Below, piece by piece: positions 3,768-64,000 of a stretch of DNA of 64,000 bases (the stretch's first letter is position 1; every line of letters begins with the position of its first letter). The position numbers and the translations under genes were made by a program. The DNA is from Oikopleura dioica (taxonomy: Eukaryota; Animalia; Chordata), in assembly GCA_907165135.1 (NCBI GenBank), contig OU015566.1, forward strand, positions 14,136,001-14,200,000. Reading direction: 5' to 3'. Below the pieces are notes generated by a model. That model saw only the letters and a program-made list of their open reading frames with translations. It was not told the DNA's origin and did not search any database.

Positions 3768-3845
3768 CCTGCAGGGGGTAATAGATTAGTTTGAACCTGT
3801 TTTAGGCAAATTAGTGTCAAATATGCTGTTTGAAAGGAGAGAACT

Positions 3846-6800
3846 TTATCTGTGGTTTGACTTGAAAACTTTGACTTGTAGGGTACTCCATATCCGGTTT
3901 TTGACTTCCCGAAGCCATTTCCGGACGTCAAAGGCCCCAGGGGCGTTTCCCAAGAGTAGTCCTTTTATAAGTTCTTTAGAGGATATTTGATGAGCATGAA
4001 TCGCAACTTGCCTAATGTAATCTTGCATTATCAACGGAGGGATCCAAAGGACTCCCTCCCATCTTAACGGATTTAGCCAGGTCATAATGATGATTATGTT
4101 AATTTCATGATCCATCATTTCACTATCGTAATCAGATGGTTTTTCCTGACGACACTCTTTGCAAGTAAAACTGTAACCGTAATGGATATGTGCTCCTTCA
4201 GTTTCTGCTTTGAGGTTGCTTGGGAAAAAATCGGTTATAAAACTATTTCTTGTAGTTTTTGTTAGTGAATTAAATGGATCAATCGTATTGTAGGGCCAGT
4301 TGTTTTTATTGACCAAATAGCCAAAATGTGACTTGCTTTTTGGGTGTTGCATTCTTATTTCAATGACTCCCGTGTCCAGCAGAGTTTTTGTTTTCATTGA
4401 CATGAATTTAAATAACCTATAATGTTCCCATTCTTCTTTATTCATCATACCGTTAAGTCTATCATTGTCAAATCTGAGTTCTTGTATTTTATCAGAGTAA
4501 AATTGTTTATGCTCGAAAAAGAAGTCTGGTAAATTGCAGATAAATTTACCCGAGTTATCTGTAATTACCAGGCAATCCAAAACAATATCTCTGGCAAACA
4601 TAGGGGTTTTATATCTGTAGATCTTAAAAATGCTATTAATGGCTTGCTTTACTATCATTAGCGCTAGCGTGGGTTGTCTGATCAAGGCTAGTTCTTCAAG
4701 TCCCTTTTCAGGAAGGGCTATGAAACCCTTCCTCTTAATGAGGATTTCTCTGGCTTTTGCAGCCCAGTCGAAATGAGATACGTATGTGCCGTCATTTTTT
4801 TCCTTGAGAATCTGCCAAATGGGCTTAGTTCTCCTGTTCATGGCTGTACTTATATACTGTTTCTGTAGGACATTGAGATCTTCAGCTGAGGGAAAAGGCA
4901 GATAGTCGCTACCATGCAGTAGCGAGCCTCCTAAGAGCCCTCTGGTCATAATTGCTAAAGATTCTCTTGGTATCCCTGAGCTAATATTTTTCAGCCTTTC
5001 AGAAACCGCCCTGAATTTATGTTTTAGATACTTTGAATTCTGGGAGTATCCTAGCTTTCCCTCGTGGGTATCTAGCATCACTCCTAAATATTTTGTCGAG
5101 CTGACAAATTCGATTTTATTTCCTTCAATTATTAAGTGATCTTTAAGTAGGTCGCTGCCTGCTTTCTTGTTGGCAGGGTGACTGACGTCGCCTGCTCCTG
5201 CTTTGGCTAGTTGTTCTGCATTGAAGGCGTTTACGTATTCTTTAACAGAAATGTTTTTAAGCGACTTACTGAAAAGAAGGGCAGTTGTTTTGCTGGATTC
5301 CGTCTTAATCCCTAGTCTCCTGAAGAGCTTGAGCATTCTCGTGGCTGATCTCTGCATGCTGCCTACGGTGTCCATCATGGATCCACCGCAGGTTTTCAGC
5401 AGGCAATCGTCTGCGAATACGGTTATTGATCCTTTCGACTTTGGCACACCGTGTGAGCACTTCCTCTTACCGGAGATAACGATGATGTCGTCGTTGTTGC
5501 CCCATAAGTCGGCATCGCCCTGGTGAATGTCGCTGCACTCCTCCTCGTCTTCGAGTTCCTCTCCATCGTCCGCCGGATCGACTACAAATTCGTCAATTAT
5601 CGGTGCGGTATAGAAAGAAAAGAGAATAGGGGAGAGGGCACTCCCCTGAGGCAGCCCCCACTTGGGGAGCTGCCTCGGGGAGCTTTTGAATCCATTTACC
5701 GTGGCCCTGAAGGATCTTGGTAGGAAGGCTTTAATAAGCCTAACTACGTCCGGCGCCGCCACGCACTCTAGGGCCTCCAACAGCTCTTTGTGCGGGACGA
5801 CGCCGAACGCATTTTTGGCGTCAACTGTTACGCACCCCCACCATTCGTGCCCTTTCGCCCAGTTGGCTTCAGACTCCAACCATGTTTTAGAGTTAACTAC
5901 TCTCTCAACATGATTGATGGCTGCACCGCAAGAATGCAGTGGCCTGAAGCCAAACTGGCTCGCGGGGATTAAGTTCTTGTGGAACAGAAAATCAGTTATG
6001 CTACAGCATATGATTTTCTCCACCAACCCCCCTAAATAAGCCGCTATAGTTATCGGGCGCAATCGCCCGTTGGGCTTAACAAGCGGCGTTACCCGATTTT
6101 CCCTCCAGTCCTCCAGAAACCTACCTTCTTCGATGGCGAGTCTGATCGGATCCAGCATAAGGCTCGAGATTCCAGCGGTCGGCAGACTCTGAATCAAGCT
6201 TTTATTTATCTTTTTCTCATCCTTTGTATCTTTAGAGGAGCTTTTAAATGCTTTGAGAAAGCTGGAAATTTTAGTATTGTCATGAAACTTGAAGCGTTCA
6301 AGACATAATCGCTCGCTTACCGGCAGTTTTTTTCTAGCAGGTGGAGGTTCTGCCTCTTTCGGGGGAACGGAGAGTAGCTGCAAAGAGACGAGCGAGTCGG
6401 CTACAGTTTCAATCTCTTGCTCGATGGACTGTTGGTTGGCGTTTTTCACCACAGCGCCGAACACCTTCCATGACGTGTTGATATCCACGTCACCGATCTT
6501 GTCCACATTTGTCGCTTGTTTCCGTTGGTCCGCAGCCCTTAACCGTACGATAATGGATCTAAGTTTTGTCGCTGAGGCTTTGAGCTTTGCTCTTATCTTA
6601 GATTTTCGCTTGTAACGAAACTGTTCGTTTTCGAATTCGTCTATGAGTTCGCCCAGGGCTATATTGTGGCTTATGTATTCTTTAGTACGGTCACTCTTGG
6701 CTATTCTATACTTATTGGTGCGTACCACAATTTCTTTTTCGGGTCGCATTATTTCGGCATAACGATTTAGCAGCTTATTACCTGTTTCTAGTTTATCCAG

Positions 6801-9283: not shown

Positions 9284-12200
9284 TTAAGAGTTCCTTTTCT
9301 TTTGTTCCGATGAGCTTTTCATTTCGCCAGTCAGCAGAGTATTTTCACCGGCCATTTCGATGTCATGTCCGAAAGTTTCGTGGATTGAAAGTTCCATCAT
9401 CTGCTTTTCGTTCTGGGAGTTAGATGGGTTTCGTTTGCGGCGCTTGTCATCTGGTAGAAGCCCCAAAATCGAGTCTTGAATTTGTGAGCGGCTTTCACCC
9501 ATATCTCGAGCAAAAATGGAACCAATCTTGTGCGCTTTTCCATTTACCTCAATTCTGTCAATTGTATTTGGGTCTGTTTCGCAGCCTCCGAGCCTGGCTA
9601 CTTTTGTCATCGTTGATTCTTGAGATCCGTAGGTAGCTGCCTGCTCCAAAGCTTTGTACACTCCATTCGAGTCGTGGACTCCAGAATGTTTGGAATACTT
9701 TTCTCGTTGAGCTTGGCTCAGATTCTCCCAAACCCAAGTTTTAATATCGCCGAGTTGGGATAAGATCCCGATGTTGAAAGCAGTTTGATTCACGTGTTGG
9801 CTTTTTTGCTGCTCCGCCAGGTTCGCAATTTCGACCTCGTGAACCTCCTGATTATTTTTCATATCTTGAACAGTTGTGTCCAGGTTGACGAAGCGCCTGC
9901 ATTTCCCTATTGTCGTGTCAATTGCAGATTGAAATTTTGGCATTTCACATGCCACCGAAACTGCGTTTGTGACCATTTTAGCCTTCGCGAGCTTCTCCTT
10001 GTCACCACCGAAGCCTTCAAGCGCCGAAGCTGTCATCGACGGTCCACATCTGTCTGCGTGCTTATTCTGCTCCTTTATTAACTTTTGTATAAGCTTGTCT
10101 GTGGCAATAGAGTATAGTGGGTTCAAGGAGCACTGAAAACCAACAGCTTCAGCCGCCTCAGTCAGTGTTTGTAGCATTGGGTGAATGATGCCCTTTCCTA
10201 TCACTCGTCTTTGCTCAGAGCTTATTGGGACGAATTGATAGGTGAAATTGGAGCCCATTCGTTGCCTTTCCAAGCCGGCGTCTACTCTTCCGAATTTCAT
10301 CTTCTTGATTGCGAAGTCAAAGATACGTTTAAACGGAATCACTCCAAGAACAGAAGAGTTCTGGTGAAATGTAAGCAGCTTTAGGTATTTGCCTCTCTGA
10401 AACTCCCAGCCGCGGCTGACAAGCTTCCTGACAACATCGTAGAAGTCTCCGGAGTGCGTGAGATTGCATTCATGAACGAACTCTCCATCCTCTTCTTTTT
10501 GTGTCCAGCATGTAGCCATGAATGGGAGTTTATATGCGTATTTCAGAGGCTCGGATGCGGCCATGGCGTTGCCGCCAAAGTGGACGAAGATGGCGAAGGC
10601 TCTGAAGGTTTTAAATACGATGCCTTTGACCGTGAAATTTCTAGTTTCATCTGTGTAGCGGAATCCATGCATCGTGGTAGTTCTCCCTTGCTTGTCATTA
10701 ACGATGGCGTCGCGGATATCGGCCGGTCGAATGTTGCACTTTGTGAATATATCGATCAGGACTTTCCCAGTAGCGTTTAACAGAATGTGTCCAGCGTATT
10801 CGACAGACCTCCATCTTTCCGGATAATGATCCAAGTCCATGACCAGAGGTCTTGTGGATGCCGCTAGCCCTTCCCGAAAGTCCACCATCGCTCTCCACCA
10901 GCAATCATCAAGATCAGACGAGGGTTCTCTTAATTTGAGCTTCTCATATATGATCGATTTACTGGTTGGGTTTTTATCCAAATCTTTTCTGGATTGTGTG
11001 AGGTATTCTGTATTCGGATTTTTCTTTTCCAGCGTTGGTTTGACCTCGTGCATGATAAGTGGAGTTTCGTCTGGAGTGAGATCATCAGGTTCAAACTTAT
11101 CCTGCGAGTCTTCATGAAGGACTGCCTCCAGAGAAGTTAGTGGGCCATCATCTTGATATTTGTCCCATTTTTCAGGTGATTTTTCTGCTTCAATTTTCTT
11201 GAACTCGTCCGATAAATCAACGAATTTGGCGTTCTTCGGTCGCGGAACAGAGTCTTTCTTGGCTTTTTTATTTGATTGAGATGTCGGATCGGCAGGCAGC
11301 TGCCTGCCTTCTTGAGGCAGATTCTCTTCATCTCTTGCTCTTTTCTTACTAGGGGTGTCATTATCATTTCTAGTGGCGTTTCTGGCATTGCCTTGGTTAT
11401 TTCTATGATTCGAGGACCGTTCATTGTTTTCATCACGCTGATTCCTATTCGATCTGCCGCGGCCTCTTCCACGACCACCACCACGATAGCCCCTTCTCGG
11501 GCCACGATTGAATTGGCGCGTGTTAGCTCTGCCCCTATAGACACGATAGTCATCCCCATAGCCGGATCCACTATTAAAGCTATTTCCGTTGGAGTAGCTA
11601 TCGTCGTAGCCTTCGTCGTAGTAATCATCGTTTTGGGAATATCCTCGTCGATCGTCATACCAGTCGTTATAGCGATCGTTATAACTCCCTGACCAGTTTC
11701 CGCGATTATTGTTGCTCCAGTTACGTCCGCCCCAACCTCTTCTACCTCTGCCATTTCGTGAGCGGTTACCTCGGCCACCGTTTCTACGATTGCCAGTTTG
11801 TCCCCGCTGTTCGCTACGTTCCCGACTGGAATCACGAGGGCGTTCGTTGGCGCGTTCGTAGTTCCTTTTCGGGGACGGCATGTTTGATCCGATTTCTTTG
11901 CTGAACAGAGTATTTATTATTACATGTTTTCCGGATCTCGCTGCTGTTCTTACAGCAGATTGAGTCCTATATGATGATGTTCTTAACGCAAAGTCTAATA
12001 GGCTGAGGAGAGGAGAGAGATAAGTTTGGCTGGGCAGGCGATAAGTGCAGAAGTTACAGCGAGTTTCCCAGATAATGGATATTCTTGGTAGATTTTCATT
12101 TTGCAACGAGCATTCTCTTCTTTCTTTAGACGGCTTCTTTTTATTTTGTATTTTCTCTCTTTGTTGATTTTGCCGGTAATTTTTCCCATCCTCGAGTATG

Positions 12201-49800: not shown

Positions 49801-50509
49801 ATGAGAAGATTTTACTGAGAGATTTGAATACTGTAATTGCTTGTGGACTTTGCGAGGGATATCTGGTCGAGCCGAATGTTATTCCAGAGTGTTCACATAC
49901 TTTTTGCAGAACGGTAAGAGGATTTCCTAGGAAAATTGATGATTCGTGAATTTTAGTGCATTTTGCGTCATTTTCAAGACGAGCTGGATTGTCCAGAATG
50001 TGGTGTAGAAACGCACCCGACTGAGCCTGAGAAATGCCTCGTCTACGACGAAGTTTTGGACCAAATTCTTTGCGAACTGATCCCTAATTTAGCGAGAAGG
50101 GTTCAAGAAGAAAAAGACAGCTTCATGGAAGTCGAGAAGATTCCCAAATTCTTAATCAGGTAATACCAACACTTCTTTCGTCCCGAATTCATGACAAACT
50201 TTTAGATTCAAACCTTCCGATAGAAAGTCTCATTCCCTCCCCCGCCCGTATGTTTTGATCAATGGCGATACTCCGCTAAATGTAGTGAAGTTACTAGCCG
50301 GCGATCCGCGATATCTCGAATTCGACAATTTCAAGATCAAAAAGCTCGAAAGAACAGTTGTTTCCTGGCTCAAAGAGGATCATTCCGACCAGTTCAAGTC
50401 AAAAATTGGTAAGAAAGAAGCAGCCCTATCCTTTTTTCAACCTTTTTTTTTAGATACTTTTGGATCTTCGAGCGAAGCAATCAAGCTGACGATCCGCTTT
50501 TCCACCTGA
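49801..50509 (+). CDS. Polycomb group RING finger (PCGF/BMI1-like) protein, multi-exon
   Basis: LRDLNTVIACGLCEGYLVEP..ECSHTFCRTCILRHF..CPECG..DEVLDQILCELIPNL. Confidence 0.75.
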
Positions 50510-50689
50510 CCCTCGTCATTATTCCATCTTTCTATTTCTGTACTTCGAAAGATCCTCTTTCTTATCCCTTATTTCAAAACCTTTCCTTGTTATTCCTCTT
50601 CGTTCAAGAAAAAAATAACCTTCCTGACTTCTGATTTCGCGGGAAAGAGGTTTTTCAGTACTCTTTTCTAGAACATCGGACGGTCGAAA

Positions 50690-52577
50690 ATGTCGAATCT
50701 CGGAGAGATCCAACGCTCTGCCGATTTTAGCCTCCAGCCGAGCGAGGAGAAGGTCAAGCAGAACTCGGACAACTGGCCGCTTCTTTTGAAGGGCTGGGAC
50801 AAGCTCAACGTCAGGACCAATCACTTCACGCCTTACCCACAGGGTTGCAGTCCTCTCAAGGTAAAGATCTCCACTTGAAGCTCTTTTTGACCCCTTTTTT
50901 GTAGCGAGAAATCAAGGACTACATCGAAACCGGTGTGCTCAACGTCGATAAGCCGTCGAATCCCTCCTCCCACGAAGTCGTCGCTTGGATCAAGCGAATT
51001 CTCAAGGTCGAGAAGACTGGCCACTCAGGCACCCTCGATCCCAAGGTCACTGGTTGCCTCATTGTCTGCGTCGGCAGAGCCACCAGATTGGTCAAGTCGC
51101 AGCAGAGCGCTGGTAAAGAGTACGTCTGCATCTTCAAGCTCCACGAGGATATCCAGGTAAAGACTTCCAATGAACAACTCGTCTAATCTTCTGAAAAAGG
51201 ATGAGCAGAAGATCTACAAAGCGATCGAAACCCTGACTGGAGCCATGTTCCAGCGACCACCACTCATCTCTGCCGTCAAGCGTCAGTTGCGTATCCGAAC
51301 CATTTACGAATCCAAGCTCATCGAATACGACAACGAAAAACGCCTCGGTGTCTTTTGGGTTTCCTGCGAAGCTGGAACTTACATCCGAACCATGTGTGTC
51401 CATCTCGGTAGGAAACTTGATTCTCTTCCTGTTTTCATTCCGTTCAGGTCTTCTCCTCGGCTGTGGAGGACAAATGCAAGAGCTCCGACGAGTTCGTTCT
51501 GGAATCATGAACGAAAACGAATTGAGCTGCACGATGCACGACATTCTCGACGCTCAGCATGTGTACGAAACGACGCGGGATGAGACTTACCTTAGGAAAA
51601 TTGTGATGCCACTTGAAGTCATCCTCGTCAAGCACAAAAGAATCATTCTCAAGGTAACGTTAGGGGTTTTTCCTTTTATCATCTGATAACTCCTCGTCTA
51701 GGATTCGTCCGTGAACGCAGTCTGCTATGGCGCGAAGATCATGCTTCCCGGTGTGCTCAGATACGAAGACGGAATTGAAATCGACCAGGAAATCGTCTGC
51801 GTCACCACGAAGGGTGAGGCCATCTGCATCGCCATTGCCCAGATGACCACTGCTGTCATCGCCACTTGTGATCATGGGTAAGTTCTATTCTTTCGGCCCA
51901 TTGTAAGCCACTTTCTAGCGTCGTTGCCAAGATCAAACGAGTTATCATGGAGCGCGACGTCTACCCTAAGAAGTGGGGTCTCGGACCAAGAGCTTCGCTC
52001 AAGAAAGCCATGATCAAGTCTGGCATGCTCGACGAGTACGGCAAGCCTAACGAGAAGACCCCAGACTCCTACGTCGATGTAAGGACTTGCAAATTTGACC
52101 ATGAATTAACAGATTATTTAAGGGTGTTACAAGCAAACTCGGCAAGGCTGTAGGAGCTTCTGGCAACATTGACGCCATGGCCGCCGCTTTGGCCAAGTAC
52201 AAGGAGATTGTTGGCGATCTTGAGCCCCCAGCAGCTAAGGTAAGGAAGCTGTTGACGTCGCAGAGGGTAAAAATGAGTTGTAGAAAGTGAAGTCAGAGGT
52301 GGATAGCATCGGGGAGGCTGTTGAGTCAATGGATGTTGATGACGGCGAAAAGAAGAAAAAGAAGAAGAAGAAGAAAACGGTAAGAAAAGACGAAAAAAGG
52401 TCTAATTAGAAATTAGTTCATTTATGAGAGATTTTTGACGTCATTTTTTTGTAGAAATCCGAGTCTGAAGATGTAAAGACGGAGCCCGCCGAGGAAGAGT
52501 CGATGGAAGCGGAATCTGGCGAAAAGAAGAAGAAGAAGAAGAAAAAGAAGAAGGTTGAAGCCTCCGACGAGGAATGA
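50690..52577 (+). CDS. DKC1: Dyskerin, H/ACA pseudouridine synthase, multi-exon
   Basis: [48 protein letters not shown], poly-K tail. Confidence 0.97.
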
Positions 52578-54321
52578 GCGCCTATCCTGGGTCCATACTA
52601 GTTCCTTTTTCCGAAATCAGACAACCCGTCAGACCGTTAATTTTTCCCCGGCTTTGATTTTTGTGATGAGAGTTGACAAACTTGACTCTTGACTGCCATA
52701 ATTTTTGTTTGTTCTTTCAACCCTCCGTGCCTTTTTTGCTAGTATCAATTGCTCTATCTTTTTTCCCTGAGTAGCTAAAATACCGTGATTGTTTAGCCAC
52801 ACTCTCTTCCTCTTTTCCTGACTGTATTTCTTCTAACTGTAAACCACGAGAGTAGAATCGAATGAATTTGGAATAAATCAAGCCGCGAGTGAAATTTTTA
52901 TTCAGAAAATTCCTTGAAAATGGGGTTTTTCTGCTTGTTGTTTTTGTCTTATTGCAGGAGAGTTGTTTAGCTGAAAAGCGTGCTGAAAAAGTCCTCCAGT
53001 TGACGAATAGAAGAGCTAAATTTTTAACTCAGTAACGAATTTTGTTCTATTTTTATTCATAAAACTAAGGTTTTTGGGCCTTGATTGTCGATTTTGCGGC
53101 TAAGAAAAGCGGTCAAAATAGACTATCTCGGGTAAAAGCTCCGAATTTCCTTCATAAGTCTTACTGGTGATTATGACTGGTCTCAAGAAGATGCTCTTCC
53201 ATCCACGGATTCATGATCAGATCTGTCAGTGCTCTTCGTTTCTGATGCGCCGGTTCGAAATGACCACTCTACGTAATCATGATCTTTTGGGATCCTTTTG
53301 GTTACAAGTTAATTACCGTAGCTCTGTCGAAAATTGCCGAACAGTTGCCAAGATAAATCAAATTAAAAAGCACAAAAAAGCCTCGCATTTCTGTAGGATT
53401 TCTCGATCTGAAAAGTTGTCTTATTTAAATGCAGTGGTGGGGATGCAGAGCGCCTGGGAAAATTAACCGTCTCGCTTCGAATCGAAGATGTGGTTCATGT
53501 GATCAATTCCACACAGTTTGCAGAAAGAGATCATTATTGACTACAAACCAAGATACAAAAAACCTTCAGGTTAAGCCAGGAGAGCGGCAAATTTCTCTAG
53601 GGAAAGCAAAAAAGGAAGATAATTAGTTCTTTTCCGCGTCATTTCATTCATTTTATCCAACCGCTTTCTCAAAAATTCAACAAGTAGATACAAGAAGTTA
53701 ATCTTTCAAACAACTATTCAAACCAGATCCTTAGTATTTTCAATCGTTTGAATTAAATATTTTCTCTTCAAATGAAAACGTGGTTTGGTGCGTGTGTGAA
53801 ATTATACCTCGCAACAAATTTGATCAAAAACAGCTACATAAATGGAATTTTCCAAACACGACGTGAAAATTGCCGTGCGGGAGCTAGAACTCTCGCTTTG
53901 GTCTGGCAGCGCTAATGATCTTAAAATGACTGAAACTCGAGTCAAACATCCGCCGTTATGGTAAAATGAGAAATGGTTTCTAAAAGTGTCTGCGAAAGCA
54001 ACAAAATCCATACTTTTTTTATTAAATGGTAATAGAATACAATTTTAATATATTTAATATCTTTTTACAAACAGTGACAATAAATTCTCGTCGTTGAATT
54101 ATCACTCCGCGCAATCGAGTGAAAAATGATATTTATCCCTTTTTTACGACTCAAAATGATGCATAGTAAGCAGAAATAACATCATAAATGAAGGGTCACA
54201 ATTCAAAATGGCAGCGTTTTATGGAGTAGCAAAGGGGCCCCTATTAAGTTCATAGCAGTCGTCGAGGTTTCGCCGCTTGGCAGAGAGAGATTTTTATAAA
54301 ATCAGATATTTCACCAGAATA

Positions 54322-54608
54322 ATGCCAGGAAGTTCAAATGAAAGCTACGTTTTTTACACGCCGCGTGAGTCTGTTGACAATTCGGCAGACAATTCCTCGA
54401 ACGATTGCCGACTGAGAAATGTTAACTCAATTATGGCGGAAAAAGACGCAGAGAATAAAGAATTGAAAGAGCAGGTGGAAAAGTACAAACAAGAACTACA
54501 AATGTATAAAAAGAATCAAGTTGTGAAAGAAAGGCCTTCAAAAGTGGAAGGAGCCCTTAATGCTGTCTTCGATGCAGTGAAAGAATTGGTTCTCGCAACA
54601 CTCCACTT
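54322..54608 (+). CDS. 5' part of a small coiled-coil ORF truncated by the retroelement insertion
   Basis: ATG 54322; the frame runs into the terminal repeat at 54609 and stops six codons later. Confidence 0.45.
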
Positions 54609-55088
54609 GTATTGTAATCACGCATAAATAACAATGGTAATGGGAATATTCCCGAGCACGCGCAATTACAATACTGTGGTAGAGAAATGTCTTTCTAAGG
54701 ATAAGGACTGGGCAGTATGTAGGGCGTGTGCTCGTTTACCCTACTTTTACTGCTTATTTCAGGGATGGTGGGCGGGTGAGTCTTTTGATTCAGCTAGGAG
54801 TCTTATTGGTAATGCTTCTGCTGAGAAAAAGCCTCTATTTTAAATTTCTCGATTTAGGTTTTAGCTGCAGGCTAAGAACCTTTAGAGTGAACCTGCGTGA
54901 TTCCGGTGCACCCGCTCGAAACCAGGTGCTCTCGGGCGCCTTTGTCACCTTTTGCTGCGTCCTGGGAGTCCCTGCCATTGGTTACTAGGCTCTCCTGCCG
55001 CGTTCTATTTCTAGCGGGCTGCTAATCCCTTTGTCCTAGATTCGTATTGTAATCACGCATAAATAACAATGGTAATGGGAATATTCCC
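54609..55088. repeat. Split direct repeat terminus: B2 54609-54653, putative A2 54654-55043, B1 55044-55088
   Basis: Identical 45-mer GTATTGTAATCACGCATAAATAACAATGGTAATGGGAATATTCCC occurs twice, separated by 390 nt. Confidence 0.9.
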
Positions 55089-55198
55089 TCCCTACCATTC
55101 TCGTTATTCTCATCAATCGATTGCTAAGGGATTCTTATTTTTTTGGCAGGAAAAAGGGAGAATCTTTTCTTTGTGATGCAGGAATCTTTTATGCTCTT

Positions 55199-56372
55199 TC
55201 AGGACTCAGTTGTTTTCGGCTTCTTTTGCTCTTGCTTGGCTTCTTGTGGTTCTTGTGGTGTCTGAAACCTTTATGATTGAACCCTAATTGTTTTGCCACT
55301 CTTACCTGAAGATGGTTATCCTCGTTGTCGCTTCCGTTTCGCTTTCTGGCTCTTGATTTCGCGACGCTGACGGGCGCTCCCAAGTTACTGCATTCGAGCC
55401 AGCATCTTTCGTAGTAATCTGGCATTGAGCTTCCTGGAGCCCATCGGAGCGTGTGCGCGAGGGTTTGCTGAGAAAGGCCTGAGCGGCGTCCCTCGATGTA
55501 GAAGCTGACTCTGCCCGAATGCGCGGAGACCTGAACAGGAGTCTTTTAAGTGTGTGGATTCTAAAGTCTTTGTACTTTTTTCGGGAGTTCCGCTTTTGCT
55601 CCGTAGCGGGCCAGGTAGTCCGAGGCGATTCTGGTGTGACCTTCTAGATTCTTGAAGACGAGTCCTTAAGGAGATGGTCAGATAATTTCTTAGAAGCTTC
55701 GCTAGCATTTTTACCTGAATCTCGGTCTCTTAACTGCGCTCTGAGTTCCAGCGCCAGCGGGACGCCGTGTTTCATCTCCATGGGGATGGTTAGAGTCTCC
55801 ATGCGCTTGCAAAATGGGTCCGTCTTGCTGCTTCGAATGTGGAATCGCCAGAACTCTTTCCCCTCTTCCTTGACGATCTCGCGGTCTTCGATTCTGAGGT
55901 TGAGTGCCTCCTTCATTCTAGCGCCCGTGGTGAAGCAGATGAAAAAGGCGATGGCTGCTTCTCTTGGCTTTGGCTTGTTTGTCCTCATGAGCTCCTCCCA
56001 CAGCCGGATTGCTTCTGGTTCGTCCACAACTTCCGCTTGCTAGAAGGTTTGAAACTACGATGCGAAAGGCGAGTTTACCTTGGGGTATTGGAGGGTTTCT
56101 GCTGCTGATTCACGGGCTCTGTGTTCGCACCAGGTCTTGATCTTCCTTTTTTGTTTTGCTGTGAGAGTCTTCTTCATCTGGGATGCGACTACATCTTGAA
56201 TCGTTGTGATTCCTTTTTCGTACGCATAAGCCTTGAGCGTTGGTCTTGTGAGGAGTCTGTCGAGGAAGTGTTGGATCACGTCGTCGATTTCCGCCTCATT
56301 GTAGTTGAAAGTGGCCATTGCTTCTGCCACCTCCCAGTGCTCTAGAAGATTCTTAAAGTCGAGCCAGGTCAT
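55199..56372 (-). CDS. Tyrosine recombinase (~331 aa); exons 56372-56079, 56039-55715, 55664-55576, 55530-55306, 55261-55199
   Basis: After splicing, catalytic residues R (TGAR), K (SKTD), HSGR, W (LRW) and Y (PDYY) are all present. Last intron is less certain (unspliced stop at 55189). Confidence 0.9.
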
Positions 56373-56590
56373 GAGTCTAAACGGTGATTTTTTAGGGTTT
56401 GGATTCGGAAAACCTAGTTTTTTTTTTTTTATTAAAAAAGGGGCTCTTGGCCGGATTGCGGCTGGGGTTTTTTTTTTTTAGTATTTTGAGACAGAATCTA
56501 AATGAAGAAACGCGCACTATAAGGGGCTAATCCCCGTCGTGGAGTGAAGTATTTTCGAAGATGGTTCTAGATTATTTTTTTTTTTGATTC

Positions 56591-57881
56591 TTATTCGACT
56601 CCGCCTTGGTCTTGGAATTTTTTGGCGTCTCCTCCTTGATTGTTTCCTCCGCCACGGCCTCGCCCGCGGCCTCGGCCTCGGCCTCGCCCGCGGCCTCGGC
56701 CACGACCTCCGGAGCTTCCGCTGCCTTCCGGGGTGGGATTCGCGTTTTCGCTCTGGTGGTCCGTCTTTTGCTTCTTGCTTTGGCTTCCGCTTCCGTGTCC
56801 TCCTCGACGTCCTCGGCCCGGTTTAGAGTCTCGCTCAGATCGCCAGTCCTCTGAACCGTCGCAGGGGTTGATGATCATTTTCTTGAAGGTTGGGTGAGTC
56901 GTGTTCATCGTCATGGCTCTGTCGAATTGGTGGCGCACATTCGGGCGCATAAGAGGCTTAATTGGTGCGTGAGTTTTCCTTTTTAGAGTCAAACGCGTAC
57001 CGTAAGAGAGAGCAGTGCATCTTTCCGAGTCATATCCGGCATCCGGATCAGTTCGTCGACGACGCTTTCGATGATGGCTCGTTCGGTGTACTCGGGAGTC
57101 ATGGCTCTTTTGTAGTTACCGAGCAACTTCAGGAGTTTTTCCCGTCTAAAGGTCCGTTGAGTCTTGGCGTCTGTGACGAAAGCCCGAAATTCCTTGCCCA
57201 TGTCGCGGAGAGAGTCTCCTTCGTCTTGTGGCAAGTTTGTGGAGCCGACTTGAGTCTAAGAAAGGTTGGAGGGCCAGGATGATTCCTTGGTGTTTTTAAC
57301 TTACCATGTAGTAGGATTCGACGCCTGTAAGAGGGTCTTTTTCCTTGAATACAGCTGCGGATTCGGCCGTATTTTGAGAGAGTTCAGTGATTTTTGTCTC
57401 TCTCGTCTTAATTTGAGCGAACATGGCTCCTTTGAGGCTGTAGCGCTCCATTTTGTCCGCGATCAGGCGGCGGAGTTTTGATTCTATTTCCGACGGATTC
57501 CAACGGTCGTAGAATTTATTCTCCTCCTCCGAGCGTTTTTTGGCGTTGGGTTCGCGCATTTTGATCTCGAGACTCTTGTCGCGGTTGGCTTCGAGTTCCG
57601 CGATTTCCTTCTATGATAGGAAATAGTTTTTTTTTTTTCTTTTGGGTTTTACTTACGATAAGGCTATCGGTGAGTTTGTCGTGAGTCGCCATATCTTTCC
57701 TGATATCTTCGATTTCGACGACCAGTCGATCGGCTTCTTCCGTCTGGGCTTGAGTCTTTGTGTGCTCGTAGAATGCTGCCTTGGTGATCTGGACTCTGAC
57801 CGCCCGCGTCTTCGCTTCTTGTTCCGTGAGCTTCGTGTGATCCGAGAGAAGCTTGGAGAGGGCTTTGGACTGCTCCGTCAT
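56591..57881 (-). CDS. Element accessory gene X (383 aa): coiled coil plus RG-repeat tail; exons 57881-57657, 57610-57305, 57255-57001, 56956-56591
   Basis: Three phase-0 GT-AG introns (46, 49, 44 nt) join four ORF fragments in frame; (RG)9 tract near the C-terminus. Confidence 0.8.
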
Positions 57882-58001
57882 TTTTTCAGTGATTCCGAGT
57901 CTAAAATGGAATTTGAGAGTCAAAATTTCTGTTTCTTTGTGTGATTTGGCCGAATGGGGAATCTGAGAGAGAGAGGAGAAAAACAGTATAAAGAGTCTTG
58001 A

Positions 58002-60690
58002 TTAGAGTCTATTTGCGATAATTTTGATTGTTGAGACGTTGGTCGCCACTTTCCAGTAGCCTTCGATGGTTTTCACCTTCGCTGGTGTTAAAATGGAATC
58101 CGCTGGGATGTCAAAGACTCTGTAGCCTTTGAGTTTAGCTTGAGTCACGACTAAAGGCTCGGCTTCGAAACACGGCACCACTAAAGCCCATGGCGTCGCT
58201 ATTTCGGTGAGTCTATTGTAGTATTTGTGGGCGATTTTCGGAGGTGGGAACGCGTACAGCTTTCTTCCGATTAGTTCATGGATTGGGAAGCTTAGGAAGT
58301 CTCTTCCAAAGGCTCCTTTTGTCTCTCGGCGCGCGATGAAGTCTCTGCATTTATTGTTGAGTGGCTAAAAAAGGAATTTTGGATTTGGAAGGCGACTCTC
58401 TTCGAATCTTACCGTTGCTGCCACGTCAATGTCGAGCGGGTCCGAAAGGTGAGATTGCAGATAAGCGAATCCATTTGCCGTTAGTTTTTGTTCTCTGGAG
58501 TCCAAATCCCTGGAGGGAGCGTCAGCCAGTTGCTTTTTTGTGCTGACCCAGTCGACTTTCATATCTATGTTGAATCTCTGAGCGAGAGTCCAGATTCTGA
58601 CTAGAATCGTGTTCATTTCGGGATCTTTGCTCCCCGCTATGGCTCCTTGGACTACACTGTCGTTGTCGCAGAGGAACAGCGCCCTTTGGTTCTTTAGTTT
58701 TTGGCCGTACCACTCGAGGGTGAATTGAATCGCAAGGGCTTCTTTGATTCCTATGTGTTTATCAGCCATTTCTGCTTCCCAAGCAAATCTCTCCTCCAGC
58801 TTCCATTGCTCGATGACGATGGCTCCTGCGTGTGAAGAAGCATCCGTGAAGATTATGAGTCCTGTTTCTTGGCGGTTCAGCTTTGTCCAATGTCTTTTGA
58901 GTCCTTTTTCTTCCAGAAGAGTCCAGAGTCTCCATTCCTCGCGGACTTCCTTTGTCAGCAAGCAGGATTCTTTTTCTTCTCTGAGCGCTTGGCTGATGAG
59001 GATTGTCGTTTGGCGGATGAGCATTCTCATGTTCGGAAGGACTTCGGCCATACTTGCCATTGTGCCTCTGATTCTTTCGAGCATCTGGGACGGAACTTCA
59101 GTTTTCGCTTCGGCTTCTTTCATAAGGTTTTTGAGGGCTGCCCATCTTTGCATCGGAATCTCCACTGTTTCGCTTTCCGTGTCCAAAATGAATCCAAGGA
59201 ATTCGATTCTTTGGGTGGGTTTGAAGGTGCTTTTGGTGATGTTCACATAGCCGCCGAGTGCCACCAGCGTCGCTACTGTTGCCCAGACTTCTTTGCCGAC
59301 TTTCTCTCCCGCTAGAAGCTGGCGTCGATCTTCTTCAGATTCTGGAGTGACGGCTAGGAGTCTATCATCGAGGTAGAGTGTTATTTTGATTCCGTTTTTC
59401 CTCAGAAAATTGACTCCACATAGATTCATCAGCTGGTAGATTCCAGGCGCGGCTGGGATTCCGAATGCGAGTATATTGTTTCTGAAGTACTGGCCGCCCC
59501 AATCGAAGCAAGCGAGTTTCTTGCTCTCTTCGCTGAGAGGCAGCTGGTGGAATCCTAGATTTTAAGTTAGGTTTCTTTTTTTTTTGCTGTTAAGTTAGAT
59601 ACCCTTTTTATCGTCGAATTTGTACAGCAGGTCTCCCTTTTTGAGCATTTGGATTGCAGCACCGACGCTTTCTAATTTGCATGGAAATGTGTACAGCTGC
59701 AGAGGCTTGAGGACTCCACCGTTCCAACAGACTCTGGTTTCTCTTCCTGGTTTGTCGACGAGAACGAATCCCGCTCGGATCCAGCATCCTTTTGAATCTG
59801 TGACTCTTGTTACCGAGCCCATTTCGCACCAGTCGGTGATTTGTTGGACAATTTCGTCGCTTCTTTCTCTTACAGCTTCTTGGCTCGGAATCGTGAGGGA
59901 TTTGTAGCGTTTGCCGATCTTCTCATATGGCCGGGGGACGAATTTTGAGAGTCTGAGTCTGTGGTTGTACCAGGTTTTGAAATTTCCGCCTAGTTTTCTC
60001 AAAGTGTCTGAGTTGGCCGAATTTCGCTTCCATATTGTCACTAACTCCTTCCGCTTGAATTCGGCAGGTTTCTTGGGGGGGTATTCTTTTGAGATTCAAG
60101 AACAGGTCTGCTCCTCCATGGACGAAATGGTAGATCAGCGGCTTCACTTTTTCAGGCATCTGATGGATGAGGACTCTCCAGTTATCTTTGTTATGAGTCC
60201 ATTGGCCCGCGATGAAGTCAGATTCTTTTCTCAGCGCAAGGGTTTCCCAGTCGGGTTTGGCCTCGTTGTTTAGAACTCTTATGACTCTGTGAAGAAGGTC
60301 TGTCTCATAGATTTTCCATTCGGGTAGTGATTTTGGGCCTGTGATGGGTTCGTTATAAATGTTGACAGGGTTTATGATTGGGAATTTTGGTCTATTGAAG
60401 ACTCCCTTGTCCGCTAGTGCTCGCATTTCCACCTCGATGGACTTCCAGCTCTTCGGCTTCTTGGCTTGTTCTCTTTCTTTTGAATCCTGCGGCTGCGCGG
60501 GCGGATTCATAGCTTCTTGGGATCGGAATCTTCCAGAAGAGTTTCTCGTATGTGGTGCCGAGAAGCGAGGATGGGTCTTCGAGTCCTCTTTCAAGTCGGT
60601 TGTCGATGTCGTTGAGATTAAGGACTCTGTATTCTGCGGCTGCGATGCGATCTCTTGGTGGCCAGATTGCCCGAAGCGTCCTGATAGCAT
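58002..60690 (-). CDS. Pol: RT, RNase H and N6-adenine methyltransferase-like domain; introns 59555-59602 and 58365-58412; frameshift at G7 run 60075-60081
   Basis: FVLVDKP..RVCWN, KFDDKK^GFHQL, LAFG, YLDD, IEFLG. RNase H: FTDAS, HIGIKE, CDN, ADAPSR. MT: DIDVAAT^PLNNKC..YAFPP. Confidence 0.93.
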
Positions 60691-61720
60691 CCCAGGCGGT
60701 GAAATCTTGATTTGCGTCGATGTTTGTTAAAAACTCTCTGAGCGTCATGCTAATTGGATTTGAGACTCCGAAGATTGTGTTTAGGTGAGTCCAGGCTGAT
60801 CTTGCTGCACTTGATAAGAGTCTCGGAAAGATGCATCTGGTGTTAGTAAGTTGAAAAAGAATCTCCCCGAATATCGCGTTGGTGATGGAGGAGCAGAGTT
60901 GCCTCTCGTTCGCGAAGGATGCCCGACGCTTTTCCGGGCTCAGGATTAGTATATTTTTGAACCTAATGTTCCAAATGTGGGCGATGAGCGTCATTCGCGG
61001 AGAGGCACGTGAATTGAGGTTTTCTGGAGGTTTGCAGCGCGCCAGAATCATTCTGAAGATGGCTTCTGCTGAGTCATTCCAGAGTCTGCCCAATATCCAG
61101 GAAACTGCTTCTTCCAGCTTCAGAAGGTCAGCTTTTGAGACAGAGTCTCTTTCCAATGGTTCCATCATTTTTGCCCAAAAAACTATTTCCGCTGAGTTAT
61201 AGACGTTTGATTCGTGCACCTGTTTCATGAGTCTCTCGACTACTGGTCTAACCGAGTGTTCTAGTTTGCCTTGAATCATTTCGAGCTCCACCTTATTTGT
61301 GGATGCGAGTCTACGGTTGATTCCGATGGATGGGCTATGTGCGATTGTGGCGATTGTTTGGAAGGCATCTATTAGTTGGATTCCCTGGAGGCCTTCATGC
61401 TCAGCCTCTTGAAGGATCGCTTTCATGATTTTCGAGGATTCTTGAGATTCGGAGATGATTCTCGCGGCTTCCGCTGCTAGGTTTTTAATTCGATCTTCTA
61501 GCGTTTCTCCATAGCATAAGATTCTTTTTGGCGGGATTGACGCATTCGTATTAAGGCTATTTTGGATGTCCCAAACAAGGCCTTTGAGCCTCTCCAGATT
61601 CACGCTAGAGTTTCGCGTTTGAGGGGGAGTTTCCGGCGTGGCTTGTTTAGCCGCTATTGGGCTTTTTGGGTGATCTGTTGTGGGGGCTTCTGCATCGGAA
61701 TCCTCTGTTTTTTGGGGCTT
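60392..61720 (-). CDS. Element gene C (gag-position ORF, over 400 aa), overlapping the pol frame by ~300 nt; first exon unresolved (~61790-61858)
   Basis: Frame is open from the acceptor at 61721-61722 to the stop at 60392. Confidence 0.65.
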   Translation of the reverse strand, partial: KPQKTEDSDAEAPTTDHPKSPIAAKQATPETPPQTRNSSVNLERLKGLVWDIQNSLNTNASIPPKRILCYGETLEDRIKNLAAEAARIISESQESSKIMKAILQEAEHEGLQGIQLIDAFQTIATIAHSPSIGINRRLASTNKVELEMIQGKLEHSVRPVVERLMKQVHESNVYNSAEIVFWAKMMEPLERDSVSKADLLKLEEAVSWILGRLWNDSAEAIFRMILARCKPPENLNSRASPRMTLIAHIWNIRFKNILILSPEKRRASFANERQLCSSITNAIFGEILFQLTNTRCIFPRLLSSAARSAWTHLNTIFGVSNPISMTLREFLTNIDANQDFTAWDAIRTLRAIWPPRDRIAAAEYRVLNLNDIDNRLERGLEDPSSLLGTTYEKLFWKIPIPRSYESARAAAGFKRKRTSQEAEELEVHRGGNASTSGQGSLQ

Positions 61721-62112
61721 CTATTTAGAGTCTTTTTTTTTTATGTTTTGAGAAGTTTATTTATTTTGAGTGACTCTTTTATTTTCTTACGGGCCCGAGC
61801 CTGATTCTGACGGGAGTTTAAAGCCTTCCAAATCCGAATCTGAACTTTGACTCTCCATTCTGAACTTTGATTCTATTTTTGGTGTTTCTTGGTTTTTGAT
61901 TTTCTTTTCCAGCTTTGGTTTTTAAGAGTTTCTTATTCTTTTTTTTAATGCTTTCTAAAGGAAGAGGCGAGGATCTTCTGATGAGATCGAAATTATTTAT
62001 TATGAACAGCTTTTCTGTAAATTTGGAAAAATGAAGAAAGGGTAAGATTCTGTTTCAGTGATTTGAGGCATAAAAAGGCAGTTTGAGTCTAAGAGTCTGG
62101 ATTTGGCTTCTT

Positions 62113-63604
62113 CTAGTGGAAGCGTCGTGGCTTTGGTGTGGCGTCTAGGTGGACTGGAGGGATGGGGATGTCGTTGAGTCTGTAGAGGCGGACGAAGACG
62201 AAACGGATGTAGTGGACCAGGTTACCACCGCAGACTTTGTAGGCGAAGACGAGGATCGCGTCCATCTTGGCGGGGTCGAGGAGTCCGTGGTCTAAATCAT
62301 AAGTTAGATTCTCTTTTTTTTTTAACGGGAGTTGACTTACCCAGTGCTTCCTTGAATCTTCGCTTGATTCCCTGGTAGTTGAGGAACTCCACCAGGTAAT
62401 GGACGATTCGTCGTTCCTCGGCGGTGAGTGCAGCAACTGGGTCCAATCTCCAGTTTTCGGTTCCTTCTTTGATGGTCCAGCCGGCTCTGGTGTTGTACTT
62501 GAACTGGCGATGGCCGGGGCTCTGGGAGTCTTTGTATTTGAGGAGTCCCTCGCTGCTGAACCAGGCTTGTCTGATTTCTTCGAAGTTTTCGATTCGGCGG
62601 TTGTCAAGCATCGCTCGGACTCGTTTTTGGTTACACAGTGATTTCTTTTTTTACTTATGTTTGTGATTTTAATTAGTTAGATTTCTGTGTAACCATTCCT
62701 GAGATTCTGCTCATCAGCTTTGATTCTTTCTTCGACAGGTAGTAATGGTTTCCTCTTCTGCCGGTTTCCGCGACGAGCAAGATTCCCACCTGTGGCTTCG
62801 TGAGCACCTTATCTTCTTCCGCTTTGATGGCTGCTTGGCGCTTTTCTTCCGCTTCTCTGTCTCGAGCCAGGCGTCTTTCTTGAGCTTCTTGTTCTTCCTT
62901 TTTCCGCTGGATTTCCTCGAAGTATTCACGGCGGATTCTCGTGTTCTCCTCCACTTGGCGTCTCATGCGGGCTCTGATGGCTTCTTTGACTCTTTCTCTG
63001 TCTTCCTGATCTTCCTTGAGCTTCTTGAGCCTGTCGACTTCTTCTTTTTGGAGTCGCCTTTGTTCTTCCGCCTCTTCTTTTTGGTGCATTCTGGCCGACG
63101 CGTTTGATTCGGATTCTTCTTCTATGTTTTCCAGCGGCTCTTTCCATCGTGCGGCGATTCTGAGTCGTCTTTCTTCCGCTGCTTTTTCTTCCTCCGCTGA
63201 CTCGAAGAGTGTATCCGTTCTTCGGCTCCAGTCTTGCTGGTTGTCCTGGCTTTGTGGCTCTGGGAATCCCGCGGTGGCTTCGGCTCCTTCGTCTTCTGAG
63301 TCTTCCAGGACTTCTTCGTCTGAGGAAAAGCCGTCTTCAGGGGAGTCCGCTGGATGGCCGTGGCTCGCCGAAGGCATCAGCTGGGATGGGTCTTTTAGTG
63401 GAGTCTCGATTTGTCCCGTTACTAATTAGATTCCTTTTTTTTTTAGATTTCTCTAAGACTCTTTCCTGAGCGTGCGTTGTATGAGTCTTCAAAGAAGTCT
63501 GGGCCGGAGTCAATGCTTGCTCGCTCGTTGTTGTTCGAGTCGTCTGATGGCAGTGGCAGTTGAGTTTGAGTCGAGTTGGTTGAGGTTTGAGTCTCTGTCT
63601 GCAT
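62113..63604 (-). CDS. Element gene B (449 aa, acidic region plus E/R/K-rich helix); exons 63604-63466, 63421-62694, 62644-62341, 62291-62113
   Basis: One GA-AG intron (44 nt) and two GT-AG introns (49 nt each) give a continuous frame. Confidence 0.65.
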
Positions 63605-63835
63605 CGAGGAATCTGTTGATTCTGAATTGAGACTGAAAAGGTGTCTAAAATTAAGGTTTTCTTTTAGCCCTTATTTATCCTGGATTTTTGAGATCAGGAC
63701 TGATTCTATCTTTTGAATTAGTTAGTGTGAGTCAGTTTTCTTGGCTCAGAGATTTTCCCACGCTAGCTTGCGTGGTTTAGTTTTATGGCGTTCTTTTTTT
63801 TTGAGAGTTTTTAGTTTTGAATATCTAAAATTACT

Positions 63836-64000
63836 AAGGACTCAATTCGAGATTCTTTTCAGCCCGTTCCTTGATAGGTTTGAGTTTCCTGGCATTTGGC
63901 TCGTTGAGCTTCGACCGGGTGAGTCTGTGTTGTTCCGTCTCGACGAGAAGTCCAGCCGATGGTTCTTGAGTCGCGTCTTGCCAGCGTGGCTGCGATGTCT
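63836..64000 (-). CDS. 3' end of a further upstream element gene (frame ambiguous)
   Basis: Two frames are open from the window edge to stops at ~63860 and 63836; composition matches the element. Confidence 0.35.

Follow-up and report, generated by a model that had tools for sequence, protein, structure and literature searches.

Here we describe a tyrosine-recombinase retrotransposon of the DIRS order in the chordate Oikopleura dioica that carries at least 13 introns, and we propose, as a moderately probable reading, that it is copied from essentially unspliced sense RNA while its proteins would come from spliced messenger RNAs (mRNAs). The stretch analysed, hereafter the window, comprises 64,000 nucleotides (nt) of contig OU015566.1 (GenBank assembly GCA_907165135.1, positions 14,136,001 to 14,200,000 of the forward strand). 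The element lies on the minus strand and measures 14,703 bp (O. dioica OKI2018_I69, G000:C4:14190609-14205311); the window holds its 3' 9.4 kb, or two-thirds, and the 5' 5.3 kb run past the window end. From 5' to 3' it comprises an open reading frame (ORF) of ~990 codons, ~760 nt of non-coding DNA, gene A, gene B, a gag-like ORF, pol, gene X, and the tyrosine recombinase, and the same gene order is found in a scaffold from Norwegian O. dioica (L039, GCA_000209555.1). An initial annotation of the window had confined the element to 54609-64000 and had suggested that its mRNAs are kept apart from its replication template; the real end lies beyond 64000, and the separation is supported here by introns that are old and inherited through transposition (synonymous divergence, dS, ~0.6-2, with the Norwegian lineage included).

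About 12 introns on the sense strand had been proposed in the window, and 11 of them stand: on the minus strand each runs from GT to AG over 39-50 nt. At least two more lie in the part of gene A outside the window. Host introns peak at 47 bp (PMC4122922). When the nine introns of pol, gene X and the recombinase are removed, every exon is open, without stops and with sensible junction codons; frames were checked by arithmetic and exon-by-exon translation, and domain searches were run with the exons singly. As initially claimed, removal restores the reverse transcriptase (RT) motif as KFDDKK-G-FHQL and the next pol junction as DVAAT^PLNNKC. The two pol introns, each of 48 nt, contain in-frame stops. 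The Pfam family RVT_1 matches 58368-59561 (E 2.1e-8) over profile positions 78-205, and because the match begins only at position 78, the first third of the RT domain must lie in an upstream exon. An intron-free distant relative (P0015; 29% identical, one uninterrupted ORF) leaves a gap of 16 residues in the alignment precisely where the RT intron lies; no recombinase or split repeats were recognised on its metagenome contig (L040), which served as an intron-free RT comparison only. In two marine metagenome ORFs of the family (P0012 and P0014, ENA), pol intron 2 is read through as 15-19 extra residues that start with V and end with Q (GT...AG), so this intron is present in environmental relatives too. 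Public gene models from two independent annotations splice pol at the same two sites, a fact that goes unremarked there. The twelfth candidate, upstream of gene B at 63422-63465, is not established: it starts with GA, conservation does not extend to its 3' boundary, and the DNA upstream of it lacks coding periodicity. Introns of the GA/AG kind do occur in O. dioica (PMC4122922).

The element is bounded at 14,703 bp because the alignment to a sister copy on another chromosome (G000:C1:7996224-8010909; 99.3% identity over 14.7 kb) stops exactly at both termini; the flanks of the two copies are unlike, and there is no target-site duplication. Exact ends, GAATCTAGG ... ATAATAC, recur in every copy with different flanks for each, and target-site duplications were absent wherever both flanks were read (both flanks in four copies; 3' flanks in five more). 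The Okinawan copies fall into four subfamilies: A, made up of the window copy and its sister, and B, C and D, which are 82%, 74.5% and 64% identical to A. Subfamilies A, B and C are each represented by one copy pair, 99.3-99.6% identical and with unlike flanks, and copy number rises within subfamilies. The window belongs to chromosome 1 of the OKI2018_I69 genome; the closest database proteins are Oidioi.mRNA.OKI2018_I69.chr1.g1079 and g887. Judged by its sequence, the family is mobile and active, has split direct repeats of the PAT/Ngaro type, and is unusually large (14.7 kb, about seven genes). The features of the window copy are given below from its 3' end, in window coordinates; dN/dS is the ratio of nonsynonymous to synonymous divergence.

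54609-64000, minus strand: share of the element that lies in the window
54609-54653, minus strand: repeat B2, 45 nt, forming the element's 3' end; identical to B1 and opening with the 12-nt palindrome GGGAATATTCCC
54654-54777, minus strand: unique spacer of 124 nt between A2 and B2
54778-55043, minus strand: repeat A2, 266-267 nt; 100% identical to A1 at the element 5' end (G000:C4:14205046-14205311)
55044-55088, minus strand: repeat B1, 45 nt; identical to B2
55199-56372, minus strand: tyrosine recombinase gene, five exons; introns 56040-56078, 55665-55714, 55531-55575 and 55262-55305
56591-57881, minus strand: gene X, four exons, with an RG-repeat tail; introns 57611-57656, 57256-57304 and 56957-57000; dN/dS 0.02-0.07
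58002-58364, minus strand: pol exon 3, a 120-residue domain after RNase H; open frame to the stop, conserved AFPP block; dN/dS 0.07
58365-58412, minus strand: pol intron 2, 48 nt, GT..AG
58413-59554, minus strand: pol exon 2, RT (YLDD) and RNase H; dN/dS 0.05
59555-59602, minus strand: pol intron 1, 48 nt, GT..AG; splits the RT motif D-x-K-x-G-F/Y-H-Q
59603-60510, minus strand: N-terminal region of pol and RT exon 1; frame break at 60081, an extra base in a run of C
60392-61720, minus strand: gag-like ORF, 442 codons open; overlaps the pol frame; dN/dS 0.06
62113-63377, minus strand: gene B, three exons; introns 62645-62693 and 62292-62340; dN/dS 0.16-0.19 (exons 1-2)
63422-63465, minus strand: candidate intron, GA..AG, upstream of gene B; not established
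63859-64000, minus strand: end of gene A; the remainder, which holds two or more further introns, is outside the window

Comparison among copies gives these introns their evolutionary signature. Across the four Okinawan subfamilies the flanking exons of the intron sites are conserved and GT and AG are kept (with one GC..AG), while the intron interiors are unalignable; lengths, with the Norwegian element included, range over 37-87 nt and are mostly not multiples of three. All nine pol, gene X and recombinase sites also occur in the Norwegian element, with other lengths, and the departures within Okinawa are confined to subfamily D, in which the third intron of gene X (X3) is absent and the fourth of the recombinase (YR4) is not alignable. 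The codon periodicity of differences between subfamilies A and B passes through frames 0, 1 and 2 in turn across the introns of gene B, which also agree with the alignment, and shifts likewise at those of gene X and the recombinase. By sequence and conservation they have the signature of real spliceosomal introns of the host's U2 type, and we infer that they are spliced in RNA.

The exons between these introns are under purifying selection. For subfamily A against B, dN/dS is 0.02-0.19 at a dS of 0.6-2, extra genes included; the exception is the short last exon of gene B, at 0.85. Inserted copies decay neutrally, yet dN/dS is low, and such a signature can be built only along lineages that kept transposing; it follows that the introns were handed down through many copying cycles.

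The termini carry a record of how the copying is done. Their layout, A1-[ORFs]-B1-A2-spacer-B2, is that of split direct repeats and, the 124-nt spacer apart, has the form known from PAT-like and Ngaro elements; the initial observation that the two B repeats are identical is borne out over all 45 nt. As read from the junctions, the passage from B1 to A2 has the sequence that closing a circle would create, with the end of B2 running into the start of A1. Inverted repeats were absent from window 50000-64000, and a comparison of the whole element with itself returned the direct A and B repeats only. Repeat B is the best conserved DNA of the family, at 87-98% identity between subfamilies (overall 64-82%) and 91% to the Norwegian element, and with its palindrome GGGAATATTCCC it is likely a recombinase binding or crossover site. 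A1 and A2 of one and the same copy agree at 99-100%, whereas A differs by 7-16% between subfamilies; B1 equals B2 in eight of nine elements read, and the two sister copies differ at a single position of B (C versus T), with the same base in B1 and B2 of either copy. Repeats that evolve in concert, in the manner of long terminal repeats (LTRs), would be expected if each cycle rebuilds both repeat copies from one template, and cut-and-paste of the whole DNA would not predict them; renewal of the terminal repeats in each generation fits a copying cycle.

What passes through that cycle is the intron-bearing form. A pol or recombinase intron is missing from none of the 11 copies examined, and every piece matched in the genome-wide search aligns across the intron sites; templates spliced in full or for the most part are therefore not being copied. 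The initial annotation had asked whether other copies share the introns at different sites, and had named a single old syntenic locus or young intronless copies as what would speak against its reading: young copies at unlike sites all keep the introns, and neither of the two was found. Loss does occur, one intron at a time. Gene X intron 3 (56957-57000) is absent from all three subfamily D copies, in frame and with no residue left, and is present in the Norwegian element, which lies outside the Okinawan A-D clade (tree support 87/99). A contig from SRR23998815 (L042), also outside the A-D clade in a weakly resolved tree, reads FDDKKGYHQ without RT intron 1. Since precise loss implies that a sense RNA was reverse transcribed after that intron had been spliced out of it, these losses point to a sense RNA that would occasionally be spliced; like the public gene models, they are an indirect sign of splicing in vivo. 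In the same contig (positions 960-1290), 13 codons past YLDD, sits a new GT..AG intron of 43 nt, an instance of intron turnover in a retrotransposon lineage. Base A is over-represented on the sense strand throughout exons, introns and spacers, at an A/T ratio of 1.8 compared with 0.89 for the host DNA of the window; we take this as weak support for a sense-RNA history.

The mechanism we propose brings these observations together. A full-length sense RNA that escaped splicing would serve as the template of the reverse transcriptase, as retroviral genomic RNA does, while the proteins would be made from spliced mRNAs that are probably also trans-spliced to a spliced leader. On rare occasions a template with one intron removed would be copied, leaving a precise intron loss, and the recombinase would integrate the product at the B/A junction without target-site duplication. 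How the template might be spared can be suggested only tentatively: the family could possibly shield its sense RNA from the spliceosome, through coating or nuclear capture by the gag-like or RGG-tailed protein, or through reverse transcription of the nascent RNA. If true, this would let the family acquire host-type introns, hold on to them and now and then drop one, much as a cellular gene does; a transposon tree could then be used to date intron gain and RT-mediated loss, and this in the animal whose intron turnover is the fastest known.

Several points weigh against copying from unspliced sense RNA. Spliced mRNA, full-length unspliced RNA and trans-splicing are inferred, not seen: three oligo-dT and one single-cell RNA run gave 0-5 partial reads on window 55089-61088 (4-5 in each oligo-dT run), at low-complexity spots and with no joints; these runs neither support nor refute splicing. 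An RNA with 13 efficient-looking introns would have to escape the spliceosome. Both intron losses rest on moderately supported trees (the 87/99 clade, and an exon-1 tree that is weakly resolved), and L042 may derive from DNA or RNA. Gene conversion could in principle mimic concerted evolution between repeats only ~400 nt apart. Finally, both subfamily A copies carry private frame-breaking indels, so that neither can be named as the active master copy. In the window copy, whose catalytic residues had all initially been described as intact, single-nucleotide homopolymer frame breaks lie at window 60081 and at element position 2237, in the ~990-codon ORF outside the window; at 60081 one base fewer is found in the sister copy and in every other subfamily, where the frame is uninterrupted, and the sister has two other breaks, at element positions 2881 and 10773-10774. 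These breaks may be mutations or long-read assembly errors.

Other explanations must be considered alongside this one, two of them already named in the initial annotation, which had offered an unspliced RNA, an antisense genomic RNA and Crypton-like DNA transposition; the unspliced sense RNA is the one we favour. An antisense full-length RNA would expose no splice signals, so that sense transcripts would be mRNAs only and 13 introns would be retained with no special escape from splicing; the logic of split repeats with an internal B/A junction should also work on either strand. We nevertheless regard an antisense template as unlikely, because the precise losses of X3 and RT intron 1 require that reverse transcription uses spliced sense RNA at least now and then. 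A-richness of the sense strand is usual for sense-copied retroelements. DIRS-1 is copied from sense RNA (PMC7192593). Slightly less likely still is transposition of the DNA itself by the recombinase, in the manner of Cryptons, with introns irrelevant to copying and another role for the RT. An intact recombinase, the absence of target-site duplications, a conserved B/A junction with its palindrome, and full intron retention would all suit such a route, and for Cryptons the presence of introns is read as pointing to DNA transposition. It sits poorly with strong purifying selection on RT, RNase H and the following domain (dN/dS 0.02-0.07), with the concert of A1 with A2 and of B1 with B2 within each copy, down to a substitution carried in both B copies of one sister, and with rising copy number within subfamilies and precise intron losses.

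Selection among progeny could also keep introns in place: templates would often be spliced, but intronless progeny could not propagate, either because expression or export needs splicing or because the introns hold cis signals. This account, which we judge about as improbable as DNA transposition, agrees with purifying selection on the whole family, and one intron has been lost from a lineage that survived; it would lead one to expect dead copies, intronless or partly spliced, throughout the genome, and none of the 11 copies lacks a pol or recombinase intron, while the unconserved intron interiors make cis signals unlikely. The most doubtful account by a wide margin is that the introns are not spliced at all and represent decayed or read-through ORFs, or a domesticated cluster of host genes. 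No spliced reads were seen, and both pol introns of this copy are 48 nt, a multiple of three; but both contain in-frame stops, and lengths in other subfamilies (40-81 nt) would shift the frame. GT..AG is invariant, bar one GC..AG, while the interiors diverge between strongly selected exons, copies with exact ends sit at many unrelated sites, and two public annotations splice pol likewise. A single domesticated locus or a segmental duplication was rejected on the selection signature and the copies at many sites.

Among described systems, the closest are PAT and Ngaro elements, whose layout is A1-[ORFs]-B1A2B2 (PMC8547959, PMC5890265, PMC13465315). The present element shares with them the split direct repeats, B/A junction, gag-like ORF, RT-RNase H, tyrosine recombinase, and lack of target-site duplication; unlike them (~5-7 kb) it is 14.7 kb long, with an extra conserved ~990-residue ORF and genes A, B and X, the 124-nt spacer, and at least 13 introns. 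No report of intron-rich DIRS, PAT or Ngaro elements was found in the searchable literature; size, four extra genes and many introns set the element apart from described members of the DIRS order. Its termini may be classed as PAT/Ngaro-like, and the conserved domain after RNase H may make it PAT-like. O. dioica, with sequences listed by Volff 2004 and Piednoel 2011, has been recorded as carrying DIRS1-like elements (PMC3266345; PMC5240408), from short domain fragments and with introns unmentioned; host and the set of RT, extra domain and recombinase are the same here. DIRS1 in the strict sense has inverted terminal repeats together with an internal complementary region, whereas direct split repeats are found here. 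The DIRS-1 element of Dictyostelium uses a sense RNA template, and its new copies had lost an engineered sense intron, with unspliced cDNA occurring as well (PMC7192593). Both are recombinase retrotransposons, but the natural introns of the Oikopleura element persist through the cycle.

Penelope-like elements are the classic retroelements able to retain an intron after transposition. They have a GIY-YIG endonuclease, an RT of another clade and usually one intron; the present element has a recombinase and 13 introns inside catalytic domains, and no ORF gave a GIY-YIG match in Pfam. In retroviruses and pararetroviruses, unspliced RNA is the genome and spliced RNAs are the messengers, and in Ogre an intron must go for pol to be translated. 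Unlike retroviruses and Ogre, with one or few large regulated introns and a DDE integrase, this element has many tiny, constitutive-looking introns and a tyrosine recombinase. With Cryptons (PMC13465315) it has in common a tyrosine recombinase, introns in coding regions, and the absence of long terminal repeats. Cryptons have no RT, whereas RT and RNase H are under selection here and the repeats behave like LTRs.

Intron loss is the textbook test for retrotransposition, and retroelements are expected to be intron-free bar a few regulated introns of the viral type. Here at least 13 constitutive-looking host-type introns have been kept in catalytic domains over about one synonymous change per site. 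A reverse-transcribing element could thus keep its template almost wholly out of the reach of splicing, and the family offers a concrete system for asking how. Intron content would also fail to tell DNA transposons apart from retrotransposons, or active elements from genes that were domesticated, and the family may bear on the exceptional intron gain and loss in Oikopleura.

The individual gene products differ in how readily they are recognised. Motifs ARMKE, HSGRV (HxxR) and DYYE are present in the recombinase exon translations, with one intron just before HSGRV; the Pfam match to Phage_integrase on exon 2 is weak (E 0.017), as is that to PF00589 in the spliced Norwegian product, and dN/dS of the gene is 0.02-0.10. 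No integrase family of Pfam matched any ORF—a tyrosine recombinase stands in place of a DDE integrase. In pol exon 2, the translation also contains the motif TDAS, and relatives bear the name ribonuclease H. Exon 3 occupies the position of the 'methyltransferase-like' domain of DIRS/PAT elements, which serves here as a predicted label only: it has no Pfam match, and an AlphaFold model from a seven-sequence alignment reached a predicted local distance difference test (pLDDT) score of 54, too poor for a fold search. The gag-like ORF is 41-71% identical to its counterparts in the other subfamilies and the Norwegian element. Nothing convincing was found in Pfam for this ORF, for genes A, B and X or for the ~990-residue ORF, whose first half also gave no usable match in the ESM Atlas; an env-like identity of the latter was rejected, since it has no hydrophobic segment.

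The ~760 nt between the large ORF and gene A (element ~3741-4500) show no coding periodicity and many indels of 1-2 nt between subfamilies, and are kept in all of these; this stretch could be an internal promoter or RNA element. Zero Rfam families matched in the element. Acceptor-like TTTAG/ACTC or TTCAG/ACTC occurs just before the ATG of gene X (57882-57910), the recombinase (56373-56390) and gene A; as judged from these sites, the mRNAs would probably also be trans-spliced to a spliced leader in an operon-like manner. In the host, 27% of genes sit in operons (PMC4122922).

A compositional peculiarity is the sequence GANTC, found 281 times in the whole element against 95 +/- 9.5 expected from shuffles (~19/kb, non-coding parts included), mainly in the forms GAATC and GACTC when read on the sense strand. 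Host DNA in the window shows the expected number; the excess recurs equally in subfamilies B and C, falls to about half in D, and is missing from the Norwegian element. GANTC was rejected as a cause of intron retention, as the Norwegian element keeps its introns without the excess.

Repeat A alone (92-93% identical; for example in G000:C13) and the B2 end alone also give isolated matches scattered in the genome, which may be solo repeats left by recombination or the ends of other family members. At the 3' end of the window copy, a plus-strand ORF of 116 codons (54277-54627), coiled-coil-like in sequence, reaches slightly into the element, which may have inserted at the end of a host gene.

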